A DNA stretch of 64,000 nt from the NCBI GenBank assembly GCA_009859145.1, contig VRVR01000056.1, positions 85 through 64,084 of the forward strand. The letters run 5' to 3'. The stretch's first letter is position 1. Each line of letters opens with the position of its first letter. The notes under the pieces are model-generated. The model was given only the letters and a program-made list of their open reading frames with translations, had not been told where the DNA came from and did no database searches. Below, piece after piece: positions 4,939 through 57,456 of this stretch. The position numbers and the translations under genes are program-made. Origin of the DNA: Andalucia godoyi And28 (Eukaryota; Protista; Jakobida).

Positions 4939-5844
4939 TTACAGCATGAAACCAATGTCGAGATTCTTGAGACCGTTTCCAGCATAGAACGAGCCGAAGA
5001 TCGAGGATTGTGGGACATGGTATGCGACGAACCCGGGCCACAGCAGCGATCGCAGAACGACGGCTCCCGAGATGGAGTCTCTGACAATAGACCACGAACC
5101 CCGTGGAATGTCGTCTGCGATGCTGGGCAGAAAGTCGATTGACTTGTCCAGATGGTGCTGCTCCAGCAACGATCCCATCTTGTCTGCGTCTGCACACGCA
5201 TGCAGATACGACAGCAGTTTTCCTGCATCTTCGCTTGTCAATCCTACGAACAGCTTATTCGCGACGACCTCCTGCAGCGAATTCAGCACAAACGCGCCTC
5301 GCGGAACAACCAAACACTCTCTTAGCAGCGATTCCACGGCCAGTGAAAGACGGTTCAGCTCCGGAACCTTTGCACTTGGCACTCCACCCGCGCCCGCACC
5401 ATCGCCTCCTTCACCTGCTTCTGCAGCCGGCTCTTCGGAGCCGTCTTCATTGACGGTTCTCGGTGCAGGAACCGGCGGCGGCGTAATGTCGTCTTCCACC
5501 GTGTACACAAAGTCGGGTTTTCCCAGCAGCGGCCCGCGGATCTTCCGTGCATGATGCTTGTCGGCCTCCGAGAGCACAGGTAGCAACGCCCACTCCGCAG
5601 CAGTGTCGGACGCAGTGAACCAGGCTCGGGACGGATACGCCTGGTTCACCGCGTCATACCCAAGCGCAACAAGATAGTCGCGCTCAATGCCATTGATCTT
5701 CCCAAACAACCGAACCGCATACGACGCAGAATTCGACTGTAGAAGCGTCAGCGAAGACGCCACAAGCACACGCTCCTCCGTGGACAGAAACTGACCGGCA
5801 CTCGACACATACGCAGCGTTCGTAACTAGAGAGTGAACATCCAT
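4939..5844 (-). CDS. RSPH9: Radial spoke head protein 9 homologue
   Basis: MDVHSL...LFGKINGIERDYLVA, VVPRGAF, IADDIPRGSWS, LRSLLWPGFVAYH, FGSFYAGNGLKNLDIGFML match the family as recalled; start moved to ATG 5844. Confidence 0.9.
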   Translation of the reverse strand: MDVHSLVTNAAYVSSAGQFLSTEERVLVASSLTLLQSNSASYAVRLFGKINGIERDYLVALGYDAVNQAYPSRAWFTASDTAAEWALLPVLSEADKHHARKIRGPLLGKPDFVYTVEDDITPPPVPAPRTVNEDGSEEPAAEAGEGGDGAGAGGVPSAKVPELNRLSLAVESLLRECLVVPRGAFVLNSLQEVVANKLFVGLTSEDAGKLLSYLHACADADKMGSLLEQHHLDKSIDFLPSIADDIPRGSWSIVRDSISGAVVLRSLLWPGFVAYHVPQSSIFGSFYAGNGLKNLDIGFML

Positions 5845-5909
5845 CGTGGAAAACACACGCACCACCTACTGCAATGTATATTATAACAACCAATAAATTA
5901 ATACTTTTT

Positions 5910-6221
5910 TTAAAAAGGTAGAAAAGCAGAAGAAAAAATAGCAGGGAACTTGAAAGGATGAAAAAGAAATGTTTTATTCAAACAAAGGAATTGGGAAAAC
6001 TGAGAAGAAAAGCATTTCGGGAAGAAAGCCGGAAAACCGTTGAATAATGACACGTCATTGTCATGCATATGGAAGCATCCATAAACAGACACGGTCAAAA
6101 CTGGCCGACACGAGCACGTTTGTTTCACAGGGAATTCGTGCTTACGCACGCTCGGCCAGAATTCATCCGGTGACACGGGCTCTGCATTTTCGACACTCTT
6201 TAACGCAGCATCCGTAGCCAT
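5910..6221 (-). CDS. Small hypothetical protein
   Basis: 103-aa ATG ORF; N-terminal half looks coding, C-terminal half runs into AT-rich low-complexity sequence. Confidence 0.3.
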   Translation of the reverse strand: MATDAALKSVENAEPVSPDEFWPSVRKHEFPVKQTCSCRPVLTVSVYGCFHMHDNDVSLFNGFPAFFPKCFSSQFSQFLCLNKTFLFHPFKFPAIFSSAFLPF

Positions 6222-6274
6222 CTATTCTATCATTCGTTGATTTGGTTTTTTGGTTTCACTTTTTTAATTCAAAT

Positions 6275-6781
6275 ATGGGCGTGCTTAGGTGCGCTGGGAT
6301 GACGCCTACGCCGCTCGATGCAGGGCCTCCTAGGTCCCGCAGACCTCCTAAGAGACCACGTGTCACTACGCCTGCCGCCTCTTCCTCTCGTATCTCCAGG
6401 TGCATCAATCGCTGCAGCTGAGGACACGAAAGCGCCTGCTGCCAGGGCCGTCAGAATCAAAATGCACCCTTCTCAGGAACAACGTGTCATGCTGAGAAAG
6501 TGGCTCACCGATGGATCGAGATTGGGAACGGAGCGCGGAGCATTTATCTGAAGAACGCCGTGAGGCGTGTTGGGGCCTATCCCCTTCCCAGCAACGGGAT
6601 GCAAGACTGAATATGCATGTCCGTTCGTAGATATGCATGGTCAGTGGGTAATGTAGGCGTTGGCAGAGCAGCTTCGGCTTGATGCATTGATTCTATAAAC
6701 CAAAAGGTCCTCCGACTGGAGAAGGAAGTCCAAAGCCCGAAAAAGAGCGCTTCCTGCATTGGACTGTGGAGCCGAGTTCAG
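6275..6781 (+). mobile_element. Internally deleted TnpB/Fanzor(2)-like non-autonomous element with candidate omegaRNA tail
   Basis: 6444-6503 encodes RAVRIKMHPSQEQRVMLRKW (IS605/IS607 OrfB N-terminal motif). 6511-6525 MDRDW, one extra G at 6526, then 6527-6610 NGARSIYLKNAVRRVGAYPLPSNGMQD* (RuvC-III motif). Several hairpins follow. Element ends are tentative. Confidence 0.82.
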
Positions 6782-6895
6782 TTTTCGTGCATCATTTCTT
6801 ATACAGAAAAAAGGACGGATTCAAAAACAAAAAGACAAAAACAGGAGAAAAAGAAGAAAAAAGAAAAGAAACTAGCAAAGCAGGCATAGGAACAG

Positions 6896-8259
6896 ATGAA
6901 GCTGAAACGGTTTCTTTTGCGGTACTATCCACCAGGAATCATTCTAGAATACGAGCACTCCACGGGCGAAGTGGGAACCAAGACGATTGACCTGCTGGAT
7001 CTGACTCCCGAGTATGCATTCTGAGACATTTATTCTACATTTCATGTTTTTTTTTTCCAGCTTCTGTGGGGTTGCCGTAGTGAACTGCTGTGTGGGATTA
7101 ATGAATGTGATTGGTGTGTAGGTCTAGTTTAGAGTTGATGGCAACGCAGCTGATTCGAACGGAGTCGATGATTTCCGAGTCGCGGAGGCCGCAAGTGCTG
7201 CGATTACTTGAGAAACTCGTTGAAAAGATGGTTACGGACCGTGACCAGTCGTTTTATCTGTTCAAGGTTTTGCGAGCGCACATCCTTCCTCTTACAAACT
7301 GCGCGTTCAACAAGGGTGGTGACCGATTCATTACGGGATCGTATGACCGGACGTGCAAAGTGTGGGATACACTGACCGGCGATGAGCTTCTTTCGCTGGA
7401 AGGGCACAAGAACGTCGTGTATGCAATTGCATTCAACAATCCGTACGGAGACAAGATCATCACGGGGTCGTTTGATAAGACGTGCAAGCTGTGGGACGCA
7501 AATACGGGACAGTTGTACTACACACTTCGCGGGCACTCGACGGAAATTGTGTGTCTGTCGTTTGATCCGCAGTCGACCCAGATCGCTACGGGATCGATGG
7601 ATCATACGTCTCGCTTGTGGGATGTCGAGACGGGTGTGGAGACACACACGCTCAGTGGGCATGCAGCAGAAATCGTCTCGCTCAACTTCTCCCAGGATGG
7701 CACGATGCTGATTACGGGGTCGTTTGATCACTCTGTCAAGCTGTGGGATACGAGAACCGGCGCGTGTGTTCATACGTTTACGGGACACCAAGGCGAGGTC
7801 TCGTCAACGCAGTTTAGCTACACTGCAGAAATTTGCATTTCCGGATCCATCGACAAGAGCTGCAAGGTGTGGGATGTGCGCACTGGACGAGCGCTGTTCA
7901 CGCTTCGAGGGCATGAAGACGAGGTTCTTGATGTGGGGTTCAATGCTACGGGATCGAGGATTGTGACTGCGAGCGCGGATGCAACTGCGCGAGTATTCAA
8001 CGCAAGGACCGGAACGTGTACGTCCGTGCTGTACGGCCATGAAGGGGAAATTTCAAAAGTGTCATTCAACACACAGGGCACTAAGATCATCACTGCAAGT
8101 GCAGACAAGTCGTGCAGGTTGTGGGAGGCTGACACTGGCGAACTATTGCAAACATTGGAAGGCCACTCCGACGAAATATTCAGCTGTGCGTTCAACTATG
8201 AAGGCGACACCATCATCACCGGGTCAAAGGACAACACCTGCCGCATCTGGAAAAGCTGA
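6896..8259 (+). CDS. DAW1: Dynein assembly factor with WD repeats 1 (WDR69/ODA16); exons 6896-7011 and 7122-8259
   Basis: Exon 1 [38 protein letters not shown] joins in frame through a GTATGC...TAG intron (7012-7121) to [16 protein letters not shown]...[13 protein letters not shown]40 repeats. Confidence 0.95.
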
Positions 8260-13626: not shown

Positions 13627-14178
13627 TCAGACACGAAGCGCACCAGAGGCCTGGATAAAGTCGTCGTACATTTGAGAGAAAGCTTGTGCGGTGTAGTTGA
13701 ACGGAGCATCGACGTCTTTGCCGATTGCGGCAGACGTGACAAAGCACGGAATGCCGTGCGTCTCTGCCAGCGCCTGTGTCTCCGCGACGTTGCGATCCGA
13801 CACGTCCGACTTTGTGGCGACGAGGATCGCCGAGGATGCCGCAGACTGATGCTTGTCGAACCAGCTGTACGCATAGTCCATTGACGCACTCGTCGTGTCC
13901 ACGCACAGCAGGTAGAAGGTCGGAGGACAGGCATCTCCGGACGTCAACGATGTCGTAACGCTGTCGTAAATCGCCTGGGCGCCTAAATCCTGGATCAAAA
14001 GCTCAACTACAACCGGTGAGTCCGGAATTCGGACTTCCTTGAGCACAAGCTCGGCGCCCATCGTCATCAAATACGACTTTGGAAATGCCGACTGCGACGA
14101 GTGGAATACTTGCAGCAATGCACTCTTTCCACTCGCTGCAGACCCAATCAGCGCAACTTTGCACCGAAGAAACAGCAT
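13627..14178 (-). CDS. IFT27: Intraflagellar transport protein 27 (Rab-like 4)
   Basis: RCKVALIGSAASGKS P-loop, FPKSYLMTMGAELVLKEV, VELLIQD, VATKSD; no C-terminal prenylation motif. Confidence 0.88.
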   Translation of the reverse strand: MLFLRCKVALIGSAASGKSALLQVFHSSQSAFPKSYLMTMGAELVLKEVRIPDSPVVVELLIQDLGAQAIYDSVTTSLTSGDACPPTFYLLCVDTTSASMDYAYSWFDKHQSAASSAILVATKSDVSDRNVAETQALAETHGIPCFVTSAAIGKDVDAPFNYTAQAFSQMYDDFIQASGALRV

Positions 14179-15175
14179 GCTTTTCTGTTAAATACGAAGG
14201 ATCGCAGATGCATTTTCACCAAAAAAAAGGGGATCCGAAAACCCCCAATTAGCCCTTGTCCGTCTTCATAAAAGTGCTGGAAAACCGGGAAAACCAGAAA
14301 TACGCAGGGATGGTAACGTGCAATGCATAACGTGCAGCATCTGCTTTTGTTTTGAGTCTTCTTCTTTCTTTTTTTTGTTTTTACAGTCGCTGCAGTGGGG
14401 AAAGCCGGGGAAGCGGGCGCATCGGCTTCCTCGCGGTCCAAACGAGAGGGATTTGGTGCGGTCAACGGCAGAAGCGCCAAAGGATGGATCAGGGCCAAAC
14501 GTAGACTGCTGCTGTATAACAGCATCGCATTCAATTTCTGAGACCCGTGTACTCCGTTGCGGTTGTGCAGCAGTCGCTGAGCAGAATTGGAAGTGGCCCC
14601 ACGTCGGCATCTGGCGTGCAGTTTTGCATCGAATGCGACGTTGGCCACGACACACCATGTTGGACGTCTCGGATTTCGGAAAGTAGGATGCAGGCAATAC
14701 CCTCACACAGCCATGTTTCACTTTGGTTTTCTTTTTTTTTTTTTTAATTTAAATTTCTGTTTGTTTGTTTGTGTTTGTTTGTCAAGACGACGAAAACAAA
14801 ATAAACCACGGTAAGAAACAGTTCAAAAGCTGCTACCGGGAGAGGAGAGAAACCAGAGAGGGCAGTCGCGATGCGAGCAACGGAGGACTGGTGCACGGAG
14901 TCACGCAGACTTTGGCCAATCCGCAGAAGGACTGTGGTGGCTCGCGGTATGTGTGAGGCGGAGCATTTGGTTTCCATTCTTCTGATCCCAAAAAGGGGAA
15001 ACAGGCACGGGAGAACACGGCGTCGAAGGAAAGAAGTCAAGAAAGACCGACAGGGGTGACTTCGGAGAGTCTGACAAGTGACGTGCGGAACAGAGTGGAT
15101 TGGAACAGTTGATCTCTCCAGAAAGGAGTTTTCGCGGCTGCAGCTCGCGTTGTGAGCAGACCACGTCCCTTTCTG

Positions 15176-15820: not shown

Positions 15821-15893
15821 GTTGGAAGTATGTCTTCTTTTGTTTTGTTTTGTTTTGTTTTGTTTTGTTTTGTTTTGCTGTTCATCTGTTGAC

Positions 15894-17334: not shown

Positions 17335-17600
17335 GCACCATCAGTGGTGCTGCCTGGACCGCATTGTGCAGTACTGGGAAGGGGGGTGGGGGGGGGGGGG
17401 GGATAGGCCCCAACACGCACTTCGGCGTTCGTAAGATAAATGTTGTGCGCATCGTTCCGTAATCACGCTCGATCCGTCAAACCACAGCATGTGGCGCACG
17501 GTCTGCTTCGGATCCGCCGCTTGCCTTTCAAAGCCATCCTCGACGTCTCGTACGTTTTCCGTAGTGTACCGGGCGTCGCGCACACCAGGACCCGCGTGTG
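17335..17600 (-). mobile_element. Second, more decayed TnpB/Fanzor-like relic (zinc-finger/RuvC-III fragment and start of 3' tail)
   Basis: With frameshifts reads ...YTT/KTYETSRMALKGKRRIRSRPCATCCGLT/IERDY/NDAHNIYLTNAEVRVGAYP; 17399-17442 is 38/44 identical to the reverse complement of 6541-6584. Confidence 0.72.
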
Positions 17601-18032
17601 ACAAGACAGGAAAGCAATGCGTCACATGTAAGAATTAAAACACAGGATGCTATTTTGCTGGCCTAGCAAAAGATGAGCATCCAAAAATATATGCAGCAAT
17701 TCACTCTCCATTCTGTGGACAATGATGCATGTGAAGAACATTTAGTGGTTGGAGGTCCTCTTGCATGCAGTCCCGTTTTTTACATTTTCCCGTTTGCACT
17801 TGTTCCTTTAATATTTAAATTTAAAAAAATCCGAACATGCTTTATCAACGCACAACTAAAACAAAAACAAAAAAACAAAACAAAAACAAAAAAAGATACT
17901 ACTTCTCTTCCGTGTCTATACATTGGAGGAAAACACCTATTCTTGTTTCCTGTTCTCTGCTTGCGTTTTTGACGGTGGTGGTGATGGGGTGTTGGTGGAA
18001 ATGAGAGAGGTGGGAAGGGGGGAGCGTGCGCT

Positions 18033-20024: not shown

Positions 20025-21485
20025 GCCCCTCAACACGACGGAACAAGAAAACAAAAACCCAGCAGTGAAAGGGAGGAAGAAGAAGAAGAAGAAGAAGAAG
20101 AAGAAGAAGAGCAAACCAATCAAAAACAAATAAGCGACGGTCTGCGCGTGCCTTTTCTTTTCCCCTCCTGATGCCGACGAAACCGCGTCTACTAAAACCG
20201 AGAATGTACGATGTAGTATAGACAGGACTCTGAAAGAAAAGGTTTTCAGAGAATAGTCAGCAAAGATGTATGTAGTCAAAAAGTTGGGGAAGGGAATCGA
20301 GCGTCGTGTTCAGAAAGAGAAAAACGCGAGAATACGATTCGTTTCCATCAACTCGGGACAAGAACGCAAGCCTTCCTATAGGCGGCTTGACCTGAATTAG
20401 ACATGCTGGTTCCGCAGGCAGCAGAAAAATGTCCTGACTGCACTGGGCGTTCCGAGTCGACGGTAGCAGACTATTCTGTCTTGTTTTGACTCGCGCTGCA
20501 GACACGGGAGTGCGAAAATGACGAGCTGTGCGGTCGGATCACTTTAAATGTGGAAATGGCAGCAACTGTCCACCGGGAATACGAGCAAAAACGGATTCAG
20601 CGAGTTTGAAAAAGTGTAACTCGAATTCTGCATCGTGATGGATTCAGGATGGCAGCATCGAGTGGGTGGTTCCTAGAACAGCAGCGGAAGGCAGGTGTTT
20701 CGAGACATCGTCCAAGCAGAACGGATCTCCTTTGTCATGCCGGTCGTCCTGCGGAGGCAAAAATCGTCACCAGCGTAACAGAAGTGGGATCTTCAAGCGT
20801 ACCAAACGGCGGAAACCGAGAAACCCCTGTCGCATCTTGCGAGCAGCCCGTTGCTCTCGCACATCGAAGCAGAATGTTCATTGCTCCTTTTATGTGCACT
20901 GCCGTCGCAGCAATCCGTAACTGACTCCGATCACATCGCACGATCAGAACCCCGGCAGGTGCAGCGCATCATAGCACACTTCCACTGGAAAAGCCCCCAG
21001 TCGCCATTTTCGACAGGGTGAAAAGACGCTGATGCTTGTGTGTCTGGCGGGCGGGTGGAGGCGTTCTCGCAAGACGCAAAACCTCCGTGTCTCTCCTTCT
21101 TGGGATGGTGCGGGAAGGGGGGGCTCCTTTTGTCGATTTTCCTGCACCTCCGTGGAGGGGGGATCGAAAAACACATGACTGCCGCACTCGAAGCGCTGTT
21201 GAATGCGCCACCTCTTTTCCTGGTTTGCTGTAGAAAACACAGTTTGAAACACGGAAGTTTCCCAGAAGTTTACGCACCTTGTGCTGTCTTCCACTTTCTA
21301 CGCTGTCTTAATTCACGCCCGCAGCCACATGCGCTAACTAGGACGTCAATTCGCTGTCGTCGTCGGCAGGCACAGAGAAAAAATGCAGCCCCCTCGACGA
21401 CTTTGAATATGTAATAAAATTTATTATCGCAACAGCACGGCCGACGAAGGCGCTCTATGACCAGACCATCATCGATCAATCGTGG

Positions 21486-23439: not shown

Positions 23440-24038
23440 GGCTGACAGCTTTGTGTATCAAAACGCTGAACATCAAACAATACGAATTTTCTTACCGTAG
23501 TCAAGTCTACTATTTCTTATTTTTTCTTCGCTTTCCTTTCTGTGTGTTGGTGTCTTCAATAATCGAACCTTCAAGCAGCACCTTTCATCAGAGACAAAGA
23601 CAAAGACAAAAACATCTCATGGCTCCAAAGAGGGGGTCTTCTTGACAAACGCAAACCGGCCGTGTTCAAAGATGCCGAGAACGAAGAAACCCGTTGATCC
23701 CCTCTTGTCGAAGGCGGAGAGCAAGAAGATGGTCATCGTCAGACGGCTGGGCAAGATATTTTTAAATTCCCGAAGATGTGATCGATTACGTTCGGAAATG
23801 CGCTCTAAGCTAGAGAACAAGAAGGAGCAAAGACAAAAGCGCCGTTCGCCGACGACATTCTGTTTCCTCCAACGTTCAATTTTGAATGTCGAGTCGACTG
23901 CGGAGTATGCTGGTTGCGAGGACCCTTTGATGTAGAATTGACGCTCGCCGCAAATAAAAACAACACGTGGCTTGGATCTGTCTTCGGTGACAGCATAGCC
24001 GATGATGACCAATAATGATTCATGTTTTTGGCGAGCGG
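23440..24038. repeat. 599-bp dispersed repeat, copy 1
   Basis: Same orientation and length as 42374-42972 (offset 18934); only one substitution seen (T23553 vs G42487). Confidence 0.95.
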
Positions 24039-42373: not shown

Positions 42374-42972
42374 GGCTGACAGCTTTGTGTATCAAAACGC
42401 TGAACATCAAACAATACGAATTTTCTTACCGTAGTCAAGTCTACTATTTCTTATTTTTTCTTCGCTTTCCTTTCTGTGTGTTGGTGGCTTCAATAATCGA
42501 ACCTTCAAGCAGCACCTTTCATCAGAGACAAAGACAAAGACAAAAACATCTCATGGCTCCAAAGAGGGGGTCTTCTTGACAAACGCAAACCGGCCGTGTT
42601 CAAAGATGCCGAGAACGAAGAAACCCGTTGATCCCCTCTTGTCGAAGGCGGAGAGCAAGAAGATGGTCATCGTCAGACGGCTGGGCAAGATATTTTTAAA
42701 TTCCCGAAGATGTGATCGATTACGTTCGGAAATGCGCTCTAAGCTAGAGAACAAGAAGGAGCAAAGACAAAAGCGCCGTTCGCCGACGACATTCTGTTTC
42801 CTCCAACGTTCAATTTTGAATGTCGAGTCGACTGCGGAGTATGCTGGTTGCGAGGACCCTTTGATGTAGAATTGACGCTCGCCGCAAATAAAAACAACAC
42901 GTGGCTTGGATCTGTCTTCGGTGACAGCATAGCCGATGATGACCAATAATGATTCATGTTTTTGGCGAGCGG
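42374..42972. repeat. 599-bp dispersed repeat, copy 2
   Basis: Direct repeat of 23440-24038. Confidence 0.95.
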
Positions 42973-57337: not shown

Positions 57338-57456
57338 AAAGTACAGCACTGGGAATTCCCGAGTGGTCACCCACCTCAGTACTACTCCAGCCTGAGAGCA
57401 CTTGACTTCGCAAATCGGACGGGATGCGGTATTTTCACTCTAGTATGGCCGTACCT
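57338..57456 (-). rRNA. 5S ribosomal RNA, single copy
   Basis: Minus strand reads GGTACGGCCATACT...CCCGTCCGAT...GAAGTCAAG...AGTAGTACTGAGGTGGGTGACCACTCGGGAA...GCTGTAC then TTTT; 5'/3' ends pair (GGUACGGC/GCUGUACU). Ends +/-2 nt. Confidence 0.96.

Follow-up and report, generated by a model that had tools for sequence, protein, structure and literature searches.

The locus and its reading

We analysed a stretch of 64,000 nucleotides from contig VRVR01000056.1 of the jakobid Andalucia godoyi And28, referred to below as the 64-kb window, and concentrated on a putative remnant of a TnpB/Fanzor-type gene within it. The remnant (copy 1 where other copies are discussed) occupies about 180 bases (6429-6610, plus strand) of the ~1-kb spacer separating a radial-spoke-head gene (4939-5865, minus strand, PF04712 in Pfam) from DAW1, and the two genes are divergent around it. 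DAW1 begins with exon 1 at ATG 6896 and has one intron; its best named homologues are DAW1 proteins, the closest coming from Cryptomonas paramaecium (72% identity) and Pythium (71%). The remnant lies 286 bases upstream of the DAW1 start codon, in the spacer to which an initial annotation of this DNA, made from the letters alone, had assigned it. Our results indicate that 6429-6610 is very probably the dead, internally deleted remnant of a Fanzor2-like (TnpB-superfamily) RNA-guided nuclease gene.

Direct reading and three-frame translation reproduced the annotated interval 6444-6610 base for base. Read in the frame of a 77-codon open reading frame (ORF; 6318-6551), positions 6444-6503 give RAVRIKMHPSQEQRVMLRKW. 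They belong to the N-terminal core motif of Fanzor2/TnpB proteins, the start of HTH_OrfB_IS605 (DTKAPAARAVRIKMHPSQEQRVMLRKW, 6429-6503, plus strand, profile positions 88-112), which was recovered by position-specific scoring matrix (PSSM), hmmsearch and blastp. In the next frame, 6502-6525 reads GSPMDRDW, the first part of the C-terminal block (G-SPM-DRD-W, plus strand), in which PSSM and relatives identify the glycine after the last zinc-finger cysteine and the RuvC-III DRD. A single surplus base, G6526, then breaks the frame between DRDW and NGA, where the relatives read DRDWNGAR uninterrupted. The second part of the block (6527-6610, plus strand) encodes NGARSIYLKNAVRRVGAYPLPSNGMQD followed by a stop and matches the retrieved proteins P0130, P0228 and P0252. 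The two blocks meet at GTGG (6500-6503, plus strand), an apparent microhomology at which the N-terminal reading ends AAG TGG and the C-terminal reading starts (A)GT GGC.

Full-length relatives and family assignment

A four-row motif probe, one row of which was relic-derived, served solely to retrieve real proteins and does not count as evidence. It returned 120 proteins, all with PF07282 (Cas12f1-like TNB), several of them Glomeromycota fragments; the first set of C-terminal proteins fetched in this way was excluded from the evidence and a later, independent set was used. For that set we built a retrieval profile from 20 real proteins together with two further pieces of the window described below, fragment 3 and part of copy 2, and with no copy-1 sequence, although 4 of the 20 seed proteins had been picked for likeness to the C-terminal peptide of copy 1. 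The profile spans only the C-terminal ~117 positions and carries no N-terminal information. Against 1.84 billion representative sequences it gave 26,879 matches at E ≤ 1e-3, and the best 150 of these included 98 proteins of at least 380 residues. From these 98 full-length Fanzor-type proteins we built a 512-position hidden Markov model (HMM) and the position matrices used throughout.

The relatives carry PF12323 (HTH_OrfB_IS605), PF01385 and PF07282 in Pfam. A profile of the 40 nearest full-length relatives, searched against the PDB, matched 9B0L, mimivirus L79, over nearly its whole length (E 7e-62), and the ISDra2 TnpB structures (8H1J, 8EXA) at ~4e-17 along with Cas12f-type proteins; the Fanzor1 protein SpuFz1 (8GKH) was not among the PDB matches of this profile at E ≤ 1e-3. 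The 9B0L entry, named 'TnpB-like protein L79', is ApmFz2, a Fanzor2 (PMC11832414). Because the relatives' profile matches L79 best and 8GKH is absent, the remnant is assigned, on the sequences of its nearest full-length relatives and not on the relic itself, to a Fanzor2-like, TnpB-proximal lineage. The family label given at first, Fanzor/TnpB, holds at the level of the superfamily and is too generic below it, the closest type being mimivirus L79. Fz2 proteins occur broadly in fungi and giant viruses (PMC10432273). The closest relatives of the remnant are unnamed metagenomic proteins; P0130 is encoded on a 715-kb contig whose small genes have hardly any Pfam matches and P0210 adjoins ankyrin-repeat genes, contexts that resemble those of giant viruses.

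Both terminal motifs are the maxima of the window

We used a matrix scan because HMMER cannot cross frameshifts. The scan covered every base on both strands and permitted a single frameshift (±1 or 2), at whichever column, at a cost of 3 bits, and the null consisted of 150 dinucleotide-preserving shuffles of the whole window, scanned on both strands in the same way. The N-terminal motif (profile positions 88-113) scored 28.9 bits at +6429, the second-best site reaching 15.7 bits and the null maxima averaging 13.4 bits (sd 1.7, highest 19.3). The C-terminal motif (profile positions 450-472) scored 30.0 bits at +6499, with a second-best site of 19.4 bits and null maxima of 15.0 bits on average (sd 2.0, highest 21.6). 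The two window-wide maxima lie on one strand and in the correct order, and they abut, their overlap being GTGG at 6500-6503.

The N-terminal assignment is also seen in individual alignments. In blastp searches with KAPAARAVRIKMHPSQEQRVMLRKW the same motif was aligned in more than 12 full-length relatives, every alignment ending at KW; examples are P0128 (196-220, KIPAEKAIRIKLYPNQSQKETLLKW, 52% identity), P0145 (41-65, KPPAARARKIRVYPTKEERQTLLRW) and P0210 (RARKIRIHPTEEQRIVLDKW). In the relatives, the Pfam domain PF12323 (HTH_OrfB_IS605) sits exactly at the position of this alignment, and both PSSM and alignments find the motif of that type, R/K-I-R-L-Y-P-x-x-E-Q-x-x-x-L-x-x-W, in the remnant. 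In a six-frame hmmsearch with filters off, the N-terminal piece of copy 1 ranked second among 2413 fragments (12.2 bits, E 0.008, positions 84-114).

The annotation had held that proteins of this type begin with the first motif, which does not fit the relatives: there the K of KIRLYP stands at a median residue of 120 (range 0-289), after a variable, often lysine-rich extension. Such an extension agrees with the highly variable N-terminal halves noted by Bao and Jurka (PMC3627910) and with the disordered nuclear localisation signal (NLS) region of ApmFz2 (PMC11832414). Upstream of the motif, an open frame at 6318-6428 on the plus strand (MQGLLGPADLL...AAAE) is in frame with it and stop-free from 6303, and by its sequence may be what remains of the variable extension; its sole match is a weak, proline-rich, low-complexity likeness to the N-terminus of P0145. 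An NLS-like RRPPKRPRV read in another frame upstream of the motif gave no significant match and was dropped.

At the other end, the frameshift-corrected C-terminal peptide GSPMDRDWNGARSIYLKNAVRRVGAYPL matches the C-termini of the relatives. It is identical at 12 of 14 positions to P0130 (IDRDWNGARNIYLK) and also aligns with P0159 (IDRDWNGARNIFLKN) and P0228 (DRDWNAARNIYLKN), while the GSPMDRDW part matches P0026 (CGSKHDRDWNGARNILL). Both P0130 and P0159 carry IDRDWNGARNI, and the terminal GAYPL is common to P0179 and P0237, the latter ending with it. The whole block of the remnant follows the pattern G-xxx-DRD-x-NGA-x-x-I-x-L...GAYPL-stop: the RuvC-III RD (DRD at 6514-6522) and the N-x-A-x-N-I feature after it (NGARSI at 6527-6544) are both present, interrupted by the one surplus base. 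The tail beyond the NILL helix has a median length of 17 residues in the relatives and is 19 residues long in the remnant, up to its stop; because these tails are of similar length, the natural stop codon has probably been retained.

The missing portion

In 90 relatives, the distance from the W of KW to the G of the last Cys-Gly has a median of 342 residues (range 309-412), or ~1.03 kb, and single relatives carry both peptides ~334 residues apart, as in P0228 (33-60 and 394-407). Together with the matrices and the alignments to relatives, this gap bears out the initial view of an internally deleted Fanzor/TnpB gene with its first and last motifs fused at GTGG and about 1 kb gone. Lost from the remnant are REC, the DPG aspartate of RuvC-I (position 278), the FETSQM block of RuvC-II (372) and the zinc finger (422-451). 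Profile positions ~114-450, and with them the aspartate of the DPG block, have no counterpart in 6429-6610, and the [TS][TS]xx plus C4 zinc finger (EEYTSKTCGxCG...CPxCG) is deleted in copy 1, where at most its final glycine (GGC, 6502-6504) is left. No intact nuclease frame survives: ~340 codons are gone, the frame shifts at 6526, and the ORF at 6318-6551 runs out into unrelated sequence. What is left is unable to code for a nuclease and amounts to ordinary transposon-associated debris.

Related remnants in the window

Comparison of 6200-6700 with the rest of the window by blastn identified a paralogue at 17399-17477 on the minus strand, 78% identical over 79 nt (E 4e-12, or 6e-10 by self-comparison). 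This paralogue, copy 2, gives independent support for a repeated 3' block rather than a chance likeness. DNA homology in copy 1 runs over 6507-6591. Copy 2 lies in a convergent spacer between a Zn2Cys6 gene and a Myb gene, and consists of two joined parts, both on the minus strand. Its 3' block (17374-17484), found by blastn and homologous to 6507-6591, reads (C)GLTDRA*LR NDAHNIYLTNAEVRVGAYP and is followed by a poly-C insertion and then TTCCCAG. The part upstream of it (17479-17576) is a 5'-truncated RuvC-II block identified by PSSM, GTLRKTYETSRMALKGKRRIRS(K)TVRHMLW, with a 1-nt deletion, which is joined to the 3' block at CTGTGG. Copy 2 is likewise defective, with the 1-nt deletion, an in-frame stop and the poly-C insertion at about 17382-17405.

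With the frameshift-tolerant PSSM for profile positions 368-396, the RuvC-II block of copy 2 scored 36.3 bits at -17564; the HMM of 98 proteins in six frames gave it 8.6 bits (positions 371-388). When the 1-nt deletion is restored, GTLRKTYETSRMALKGKRRIRS plus KTVRHMLW corresponds to the family's LLPKFETSQMVKKGKRKIRSKTARAMLTW. A reading of these bases as a zinc finger ('C-A-T-C-C-G') was dropped, since restoring the one nucleotide gives KTVRHMLW, the family's KTARAMLTW. Profile positions ~397-450 make up the internal deletion of copy 2. Its junction is ...ATGCTGTGG|TTTGACGGATCGAG... and that of copy 1 is ...AGAAAGTGG|CTCACCGATGGATCGAG...; both are at GTGG, and the 3' breakpoints differ by no more than about 10 nt. 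A disruption at the DRD[W/Y] / NGA boundary, where the relatives are uninterrupted, is likewise found in both copies.

The other remnant, fragment 3 (VRVLPASYFPKSETSNMVCRGQRRIRCKTARQMPTWGHFQF, 14578-14706, minus strand), comes from the RuvC-II region, was recovered by hmmsearch and PSSM and is frameshifted downstream. It had ranked first with the probe-derived HMM (14748-14269, minus strand, YFPKSETSNMVCRGQRRIRCKTARQMPTWGHFQF, 21.9 bits, E 1.8e-5), and against the profile of 98 proteins, with filters off, hmmsearch gave 42 bits (E 7.5e-12, positions 369-403). On the RuvC-II matrix it reached 53.7 bits, the next best site in the window after both remnants scoring 14.3 bits and 60 plain mononucleotide shuffles giving a maximum of 22.5. 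Fragment 3 is 59-72% identical to P0180 and P0171, resembles the RuvC-II block of copy 2 in its DNA and is 5'-truncated at an A-rich tract. The frameshifted SAQRLLHNR and TEYTGLRN downstream of it may continue towards the zinc finger. By sequence, then, the window holds at least three remnants of the same family. They do not bear out the suggestion, made at the outset, of an active or recently active family: identity between the copies is just 78%, frameshifts and truncations mark them, and the window contains no intact copy.

Two further sites were considered and rejected. The second-best C-terminal match, at +11264 (19.4 bits), is inside the null range and antisense to a long ORF. The minus-strand site ~20840-20920 (IKGAMNILLR, ...AVHIKGAMNILLRCARATG), a candidate fourth remnant resembling DRDxNGARNILLR, had E 0.13 in the first-profile search and scored 14.8 bits with the PSSM, which is the null mean.

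Evidence that weighs against the assignment

Several results count against reading 6429-6610 as an internally deleted Fanzor2-like gene. The relic peptides gave nothing against Pfam and NCBIfam at E ≤ 10 except a spurious GroEL match, nothing relevant against the PDB with phmmer, and, as a composite in a word-indexed search of 5.8 billion proteins, no candidate. These blanks may be due to the speed pre-filters, to the length of the peptides (20-35 residues) or to both. The profile check proposed for the two peptides has in this way given a divided answer, with no match in Pfam, NCBIfam or the PDB on one side, and matrix scores of 28.9 and 30.0 bits and related copies in the window on the other.

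The ends of an element were equally elusive. Neither convincing inverted repeats in 6000-6900 nor a target-site duplication marking an element boundary was found, the predicted RNA fold of 6500-6700 was not better than that of shuffles (z-score -0.89), and homology between copies 1 and 2 could not be detected past about 6591. Within the copies, the stretch from GTGG to GATCGAG is poorly kept (3/7 bases and a 3-nt indel). The microhomology at GTGG, the breakpoint and the order of events are inferred.

The frame of the N-terminal motif also continues past KW over 6504-6548 (LTDGSRLGTERGAFI*; LTDGSRLGTER) with a weak likeness to the family's KW(F/I)GxxR(W/L)TYN, as in RWI-EGARLTYNR of P0125. Because the same bases are C-terminal by DNA homology with copy 2, this likeness to KWxGxxRxTYN, far weaker than the C-terminal reading, is probably a coincidence.

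Other searches around the locus were negative too. There was no Rfam match at the locus, the upstream and downstream flanks of copies 1 and 2 could not be aligned above shuffles, and neither terminal inverted repeats nor common ends were found in the two copies. A serine-recombinase TnpA in an IS607-type carrier has been described for the Fanzor2 clade by Bao and Jurka in 2013 (PMC3627910). No recombinase or transposase, TnpA included, was present among the 15 longer window ORFs scanned with Pfam, nor was a recombinase found next to the relatives P0130 and P0210. The proposed check for a linked recombinase and for element ends thus yielded no recombinase among the ORFs scanned and no ends from the alignment of the copies.

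An 18-mer exact scan of metagenome contigs gave 8 matches with no Fanzor signal, their identity of 18-22 bases being that of chance. One of these matches (MKWU01005086.1, 9200-13100) is a long array with a 61-nt period and a common core of 12-14 nt, unrelated to the remnant.

Proposed history and alternatives

The history that we propose starts with a mobile element or a giant-virus-derived insertion, which would have placed a Fanzor2-like gene between the radial-spoke and DAW1 genes. About 340 codons (REC, the RuvC-I Asp, the RuvC-II Glu and most of the zinc finger) would then have been deleted at the 4-base repeat GTGG. What survives is about 25 residues from the beginning of the conserved core, a beta-strand/helix start, and about 35 from the end of the protein: the glycine that follows the last zinc-finger cysteine, the DRD of RuvC-III, the NGARNI helix and a tail with its stop. 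Microhomology-mediated end joining, replication slippage or abortive transposon gap repair could have left a GTGG-type junction, and a 1-base insertion, after or before the deletion, would have broken the remaining frame. The breakpoint named in the annotation, between K-W and an ancestral C-G, is plausible but not unique, as copy 2 joins the 3' block to L-W at GTGG.

That observation leads to the alternative that survives best, a sequential deletion. Here the progenitor would already have lacked ~397-450, the zinc-finger region, a state kept in copy 2, and would have propagated in that form; copy 1 would then have lost the stretch from AAGTGG (K-W) to CTGTGG (L-W). In both copies a W codon is joined to the same 3' block at GTGG, the upstream block of copy 2 runs to ...RHMLW, the family's AMLTW, and both copies are frame-disrupted at DRD[W/Y] / NGA where the relatives are intact. 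Against this stand the number of copies, only two, and the poor conservation (3/7) of the 7-10 bases that follow GTGG; the common disruption could be an alignment ambiguity, and two deletions could have run independently into the same TGTGG (Cys-Gly) site. We regard the sequential course as a tenable possibility that is rather more doubtful than not; it alters the history of the breakpoint and not the identity of the remnant. More generally, the data suggest, without proving it, that copies 1 and 2 descend from an already defective progenitor copied to several sites. Compared with two independent deletions into the Cys-Gly TGTGG, a defective progenitor is slightly favoured because the junction and the frame disruption are common to both copies.

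Defective copies might also have kept a role. That copies 1 and 2, with their common 3' junction and frame disruption, represent a propagating defective Fanzor2-type family whose 3' block serves in trans, as part of a guide-RNA/right-end module for an intact Fanzor encoded elsewhere in the genome, and so an Fz2 counterpart of the Fz1 ghost loci, seems to us unlikely. Distinctly unlikely is a ghost element functional in trans, in which the 3' block would be part of a transcribed ωRNA/right-end module loaded by an intact Fanzor elsewhere, or an element that is still mobilisable. Spizellomyces has ghost loci that lack an ORF and keep a conserved ωRNA region, and ωRNAs overlap the 3' end of the ORF (PMC10432273), and the 20-nt GCGTGTTGGGGCCTATCCCC is identical in both copies compared with 78% overall. 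That 20-mer, however, encodes the conserved tail RVGAYP, and the copies are without homology past ~6591, where a scaffold or right end should be. The ApmFz2 scaffold, at ~205 nt (PMC11832414), exceeds the stretch conserved here, and the fold, inverted-repeat and Rfam results given above likewise speak against such an element.

A juxtaposition by chance of 5' and 3' fragments from separate insertions or rearrangements, with no deletion within a gene, is very unlikely. The neighbourhood does contain truncated remnants (fragment 3, and copy 2 with its missing 5' part), but the two blocks are on the same strand, in the right order and in direct abutment, sharing GTGG with no foreign bases between them, and copy 2 has the same kind of internal fusion. 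Finally, a chance likeness of short peptides to the motifs through reading several frames, for which the shortness of the peptides, the one assumed frameshift and the negative searches of curated libraries could be cited, is effectively refuted, both motifs being window maxima 7-10 bits above all 150 shuffle maxima with frameshifts allowed in the null, lying adjacent to each other, and the 3' block having a paralogue (E 4e-12) that itself carries a 36-bit RuvC-II block.

Surroundings and wider meaning

The remnant is not expected to have an effect on DAW1. Three cilia/flagellum-related genes lie within 10 kb: the radial-spoke-head gene (4939-5865, PF04712), DAW1 (6896-8259) and a Ras-family small GTPase gene (~13650-14200), which may be IFT27/RABL4-like. 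Pfam also places a Zn2Cys6 factor, Myb factors and a hybrid histidine kinase in the window, next to the flagellar genes. The Zn2Cys6 factor and the hybrid histidine kinase have a fungal look, and this gene content as a whole is suggestive of a zoosporic (flagellated) fungus or a similar protist. The spacers contain (CAAAA/CAAAC)n-type microsatellites and long A/T-rich tracts (14760-14800, 15830-15890 and 17870-17900), one of them directly upstream of fragment 3. A 599-bp direct repeat (23440-24038 and 42374-42972), 99.8% identical, has its two copies 19 kb apart and contains small ORFs without a Pfam match; it could be a recent duplication, the product of gene conversion or a young repeat. The window also contains a single dispersed 5S rRNA gene (57338-57456, minus strand; Rfam RF00001, 100.8 bits) and no tRNA genes.

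If our reading is correct, the remnant records that this genome was once colonised by Fanzor2-type elements, and it points to a way in which such elements may decay, by losing their interior at tiny repeats so that recognisable 'first plus last motif' scars stay behind in the gene spacers. With three remnants in 11 kb, many more may be present in the genome. They would belong to a little-studied Fz2 branch, perhaps a large Fz2-type family in this genome, and intact nucleases with their guide RNAs could exist there. The fused-motif signature, combined with a frameshift-tolerant matrix, offers a usable search for such scars.

Comparison with known systems

Internal deletion of this kind is familiar from defective DNA transposons. 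Ds elements derived from Ac, and defective P and mariner elements, have lost their interior and kept the gene ends, joined at a few bases of microhomology, and defective copies of this sort can be propagated in trans. The remnant is like them in its internal deletion, but no element termini were found around it. Among public proteins, P0101 (125 aa) and P0104 (103 aa) combine PF12323 with PF07282 within just 103-125 residues and have the appearance of natural internal deletions of TnpB genes with the N and C ends fused, a scar of the kind described here; their sequences are prokaryote-like.

The TnpB/Fanzor superfamily has been defined by the motif D-X(125,275)-[TS]-[TS]-X-X-[C4 zinc finger]-X(5,50)-RD (Bao and Jurka, 2013; PMC3627910). 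The remnant is derived from a member of this superfamily and is not itself a complete member. Its closest known counterpart is Fanzor2 L79/ApmFz2 of the Fz2 clade (Saito et al., 2023), which the relatives match as described above and whose architecture they share: a disordered N-terminal extension, the HTH/WED start (KIRLYPTxEQxxxLxxWF), the RuvC-I DPG, the zinc finger and DRDxNxAxNI. At the RuvC-II position the relatives have LLPxFETSQM whereas L79 has GKLNVKS. In contrast to L79, the relic keeps only the first and last block, without the catalytic and RNA-binding parts, and is frameshifted.

Prokaryotic TnpB proteins of IS200/IS605 and IS607 (ISDra2, 8H1J/8EXA) belong to the same superfamily and have similar end motifs (~RxYPxxEQ at the N-terminus and ~C..CG...DRD.NAA.NI at the C-terminus). 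Identity to them is much below that to L79, the relatives have the eukaryote-type N-terminal extension, and the relic lies between eukaryotic cilia genes. Fanzor1, represented by SpuFz1 (8GKH), is a eukaryotic TnpB homologue with the common superfamily motif D...[TS][TS]xx-Zn finger...RD (PMC3627910) and has enlarged REC/RuvC regions (PMC10432273).

Spizellomyces punctatus has 42 full-length or partial Fz loci and 134 ORF-less ghost loci (Saito et al., 2023; PMC10432273), and its partial and ghost loci are likewise scattered, defective Fanzor derivatives. Those loci are of the Fanzor1 type and carry inverted repeats of 30 nt as well as a conserved ωRNA region, whereas the locus described here is Fz2-like, neither of these features was detected and both coding ends are kept. 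Defective Fanzor loci are already known, and the remnant between the radial-spoke-head gene and DAW1 adds a further case.

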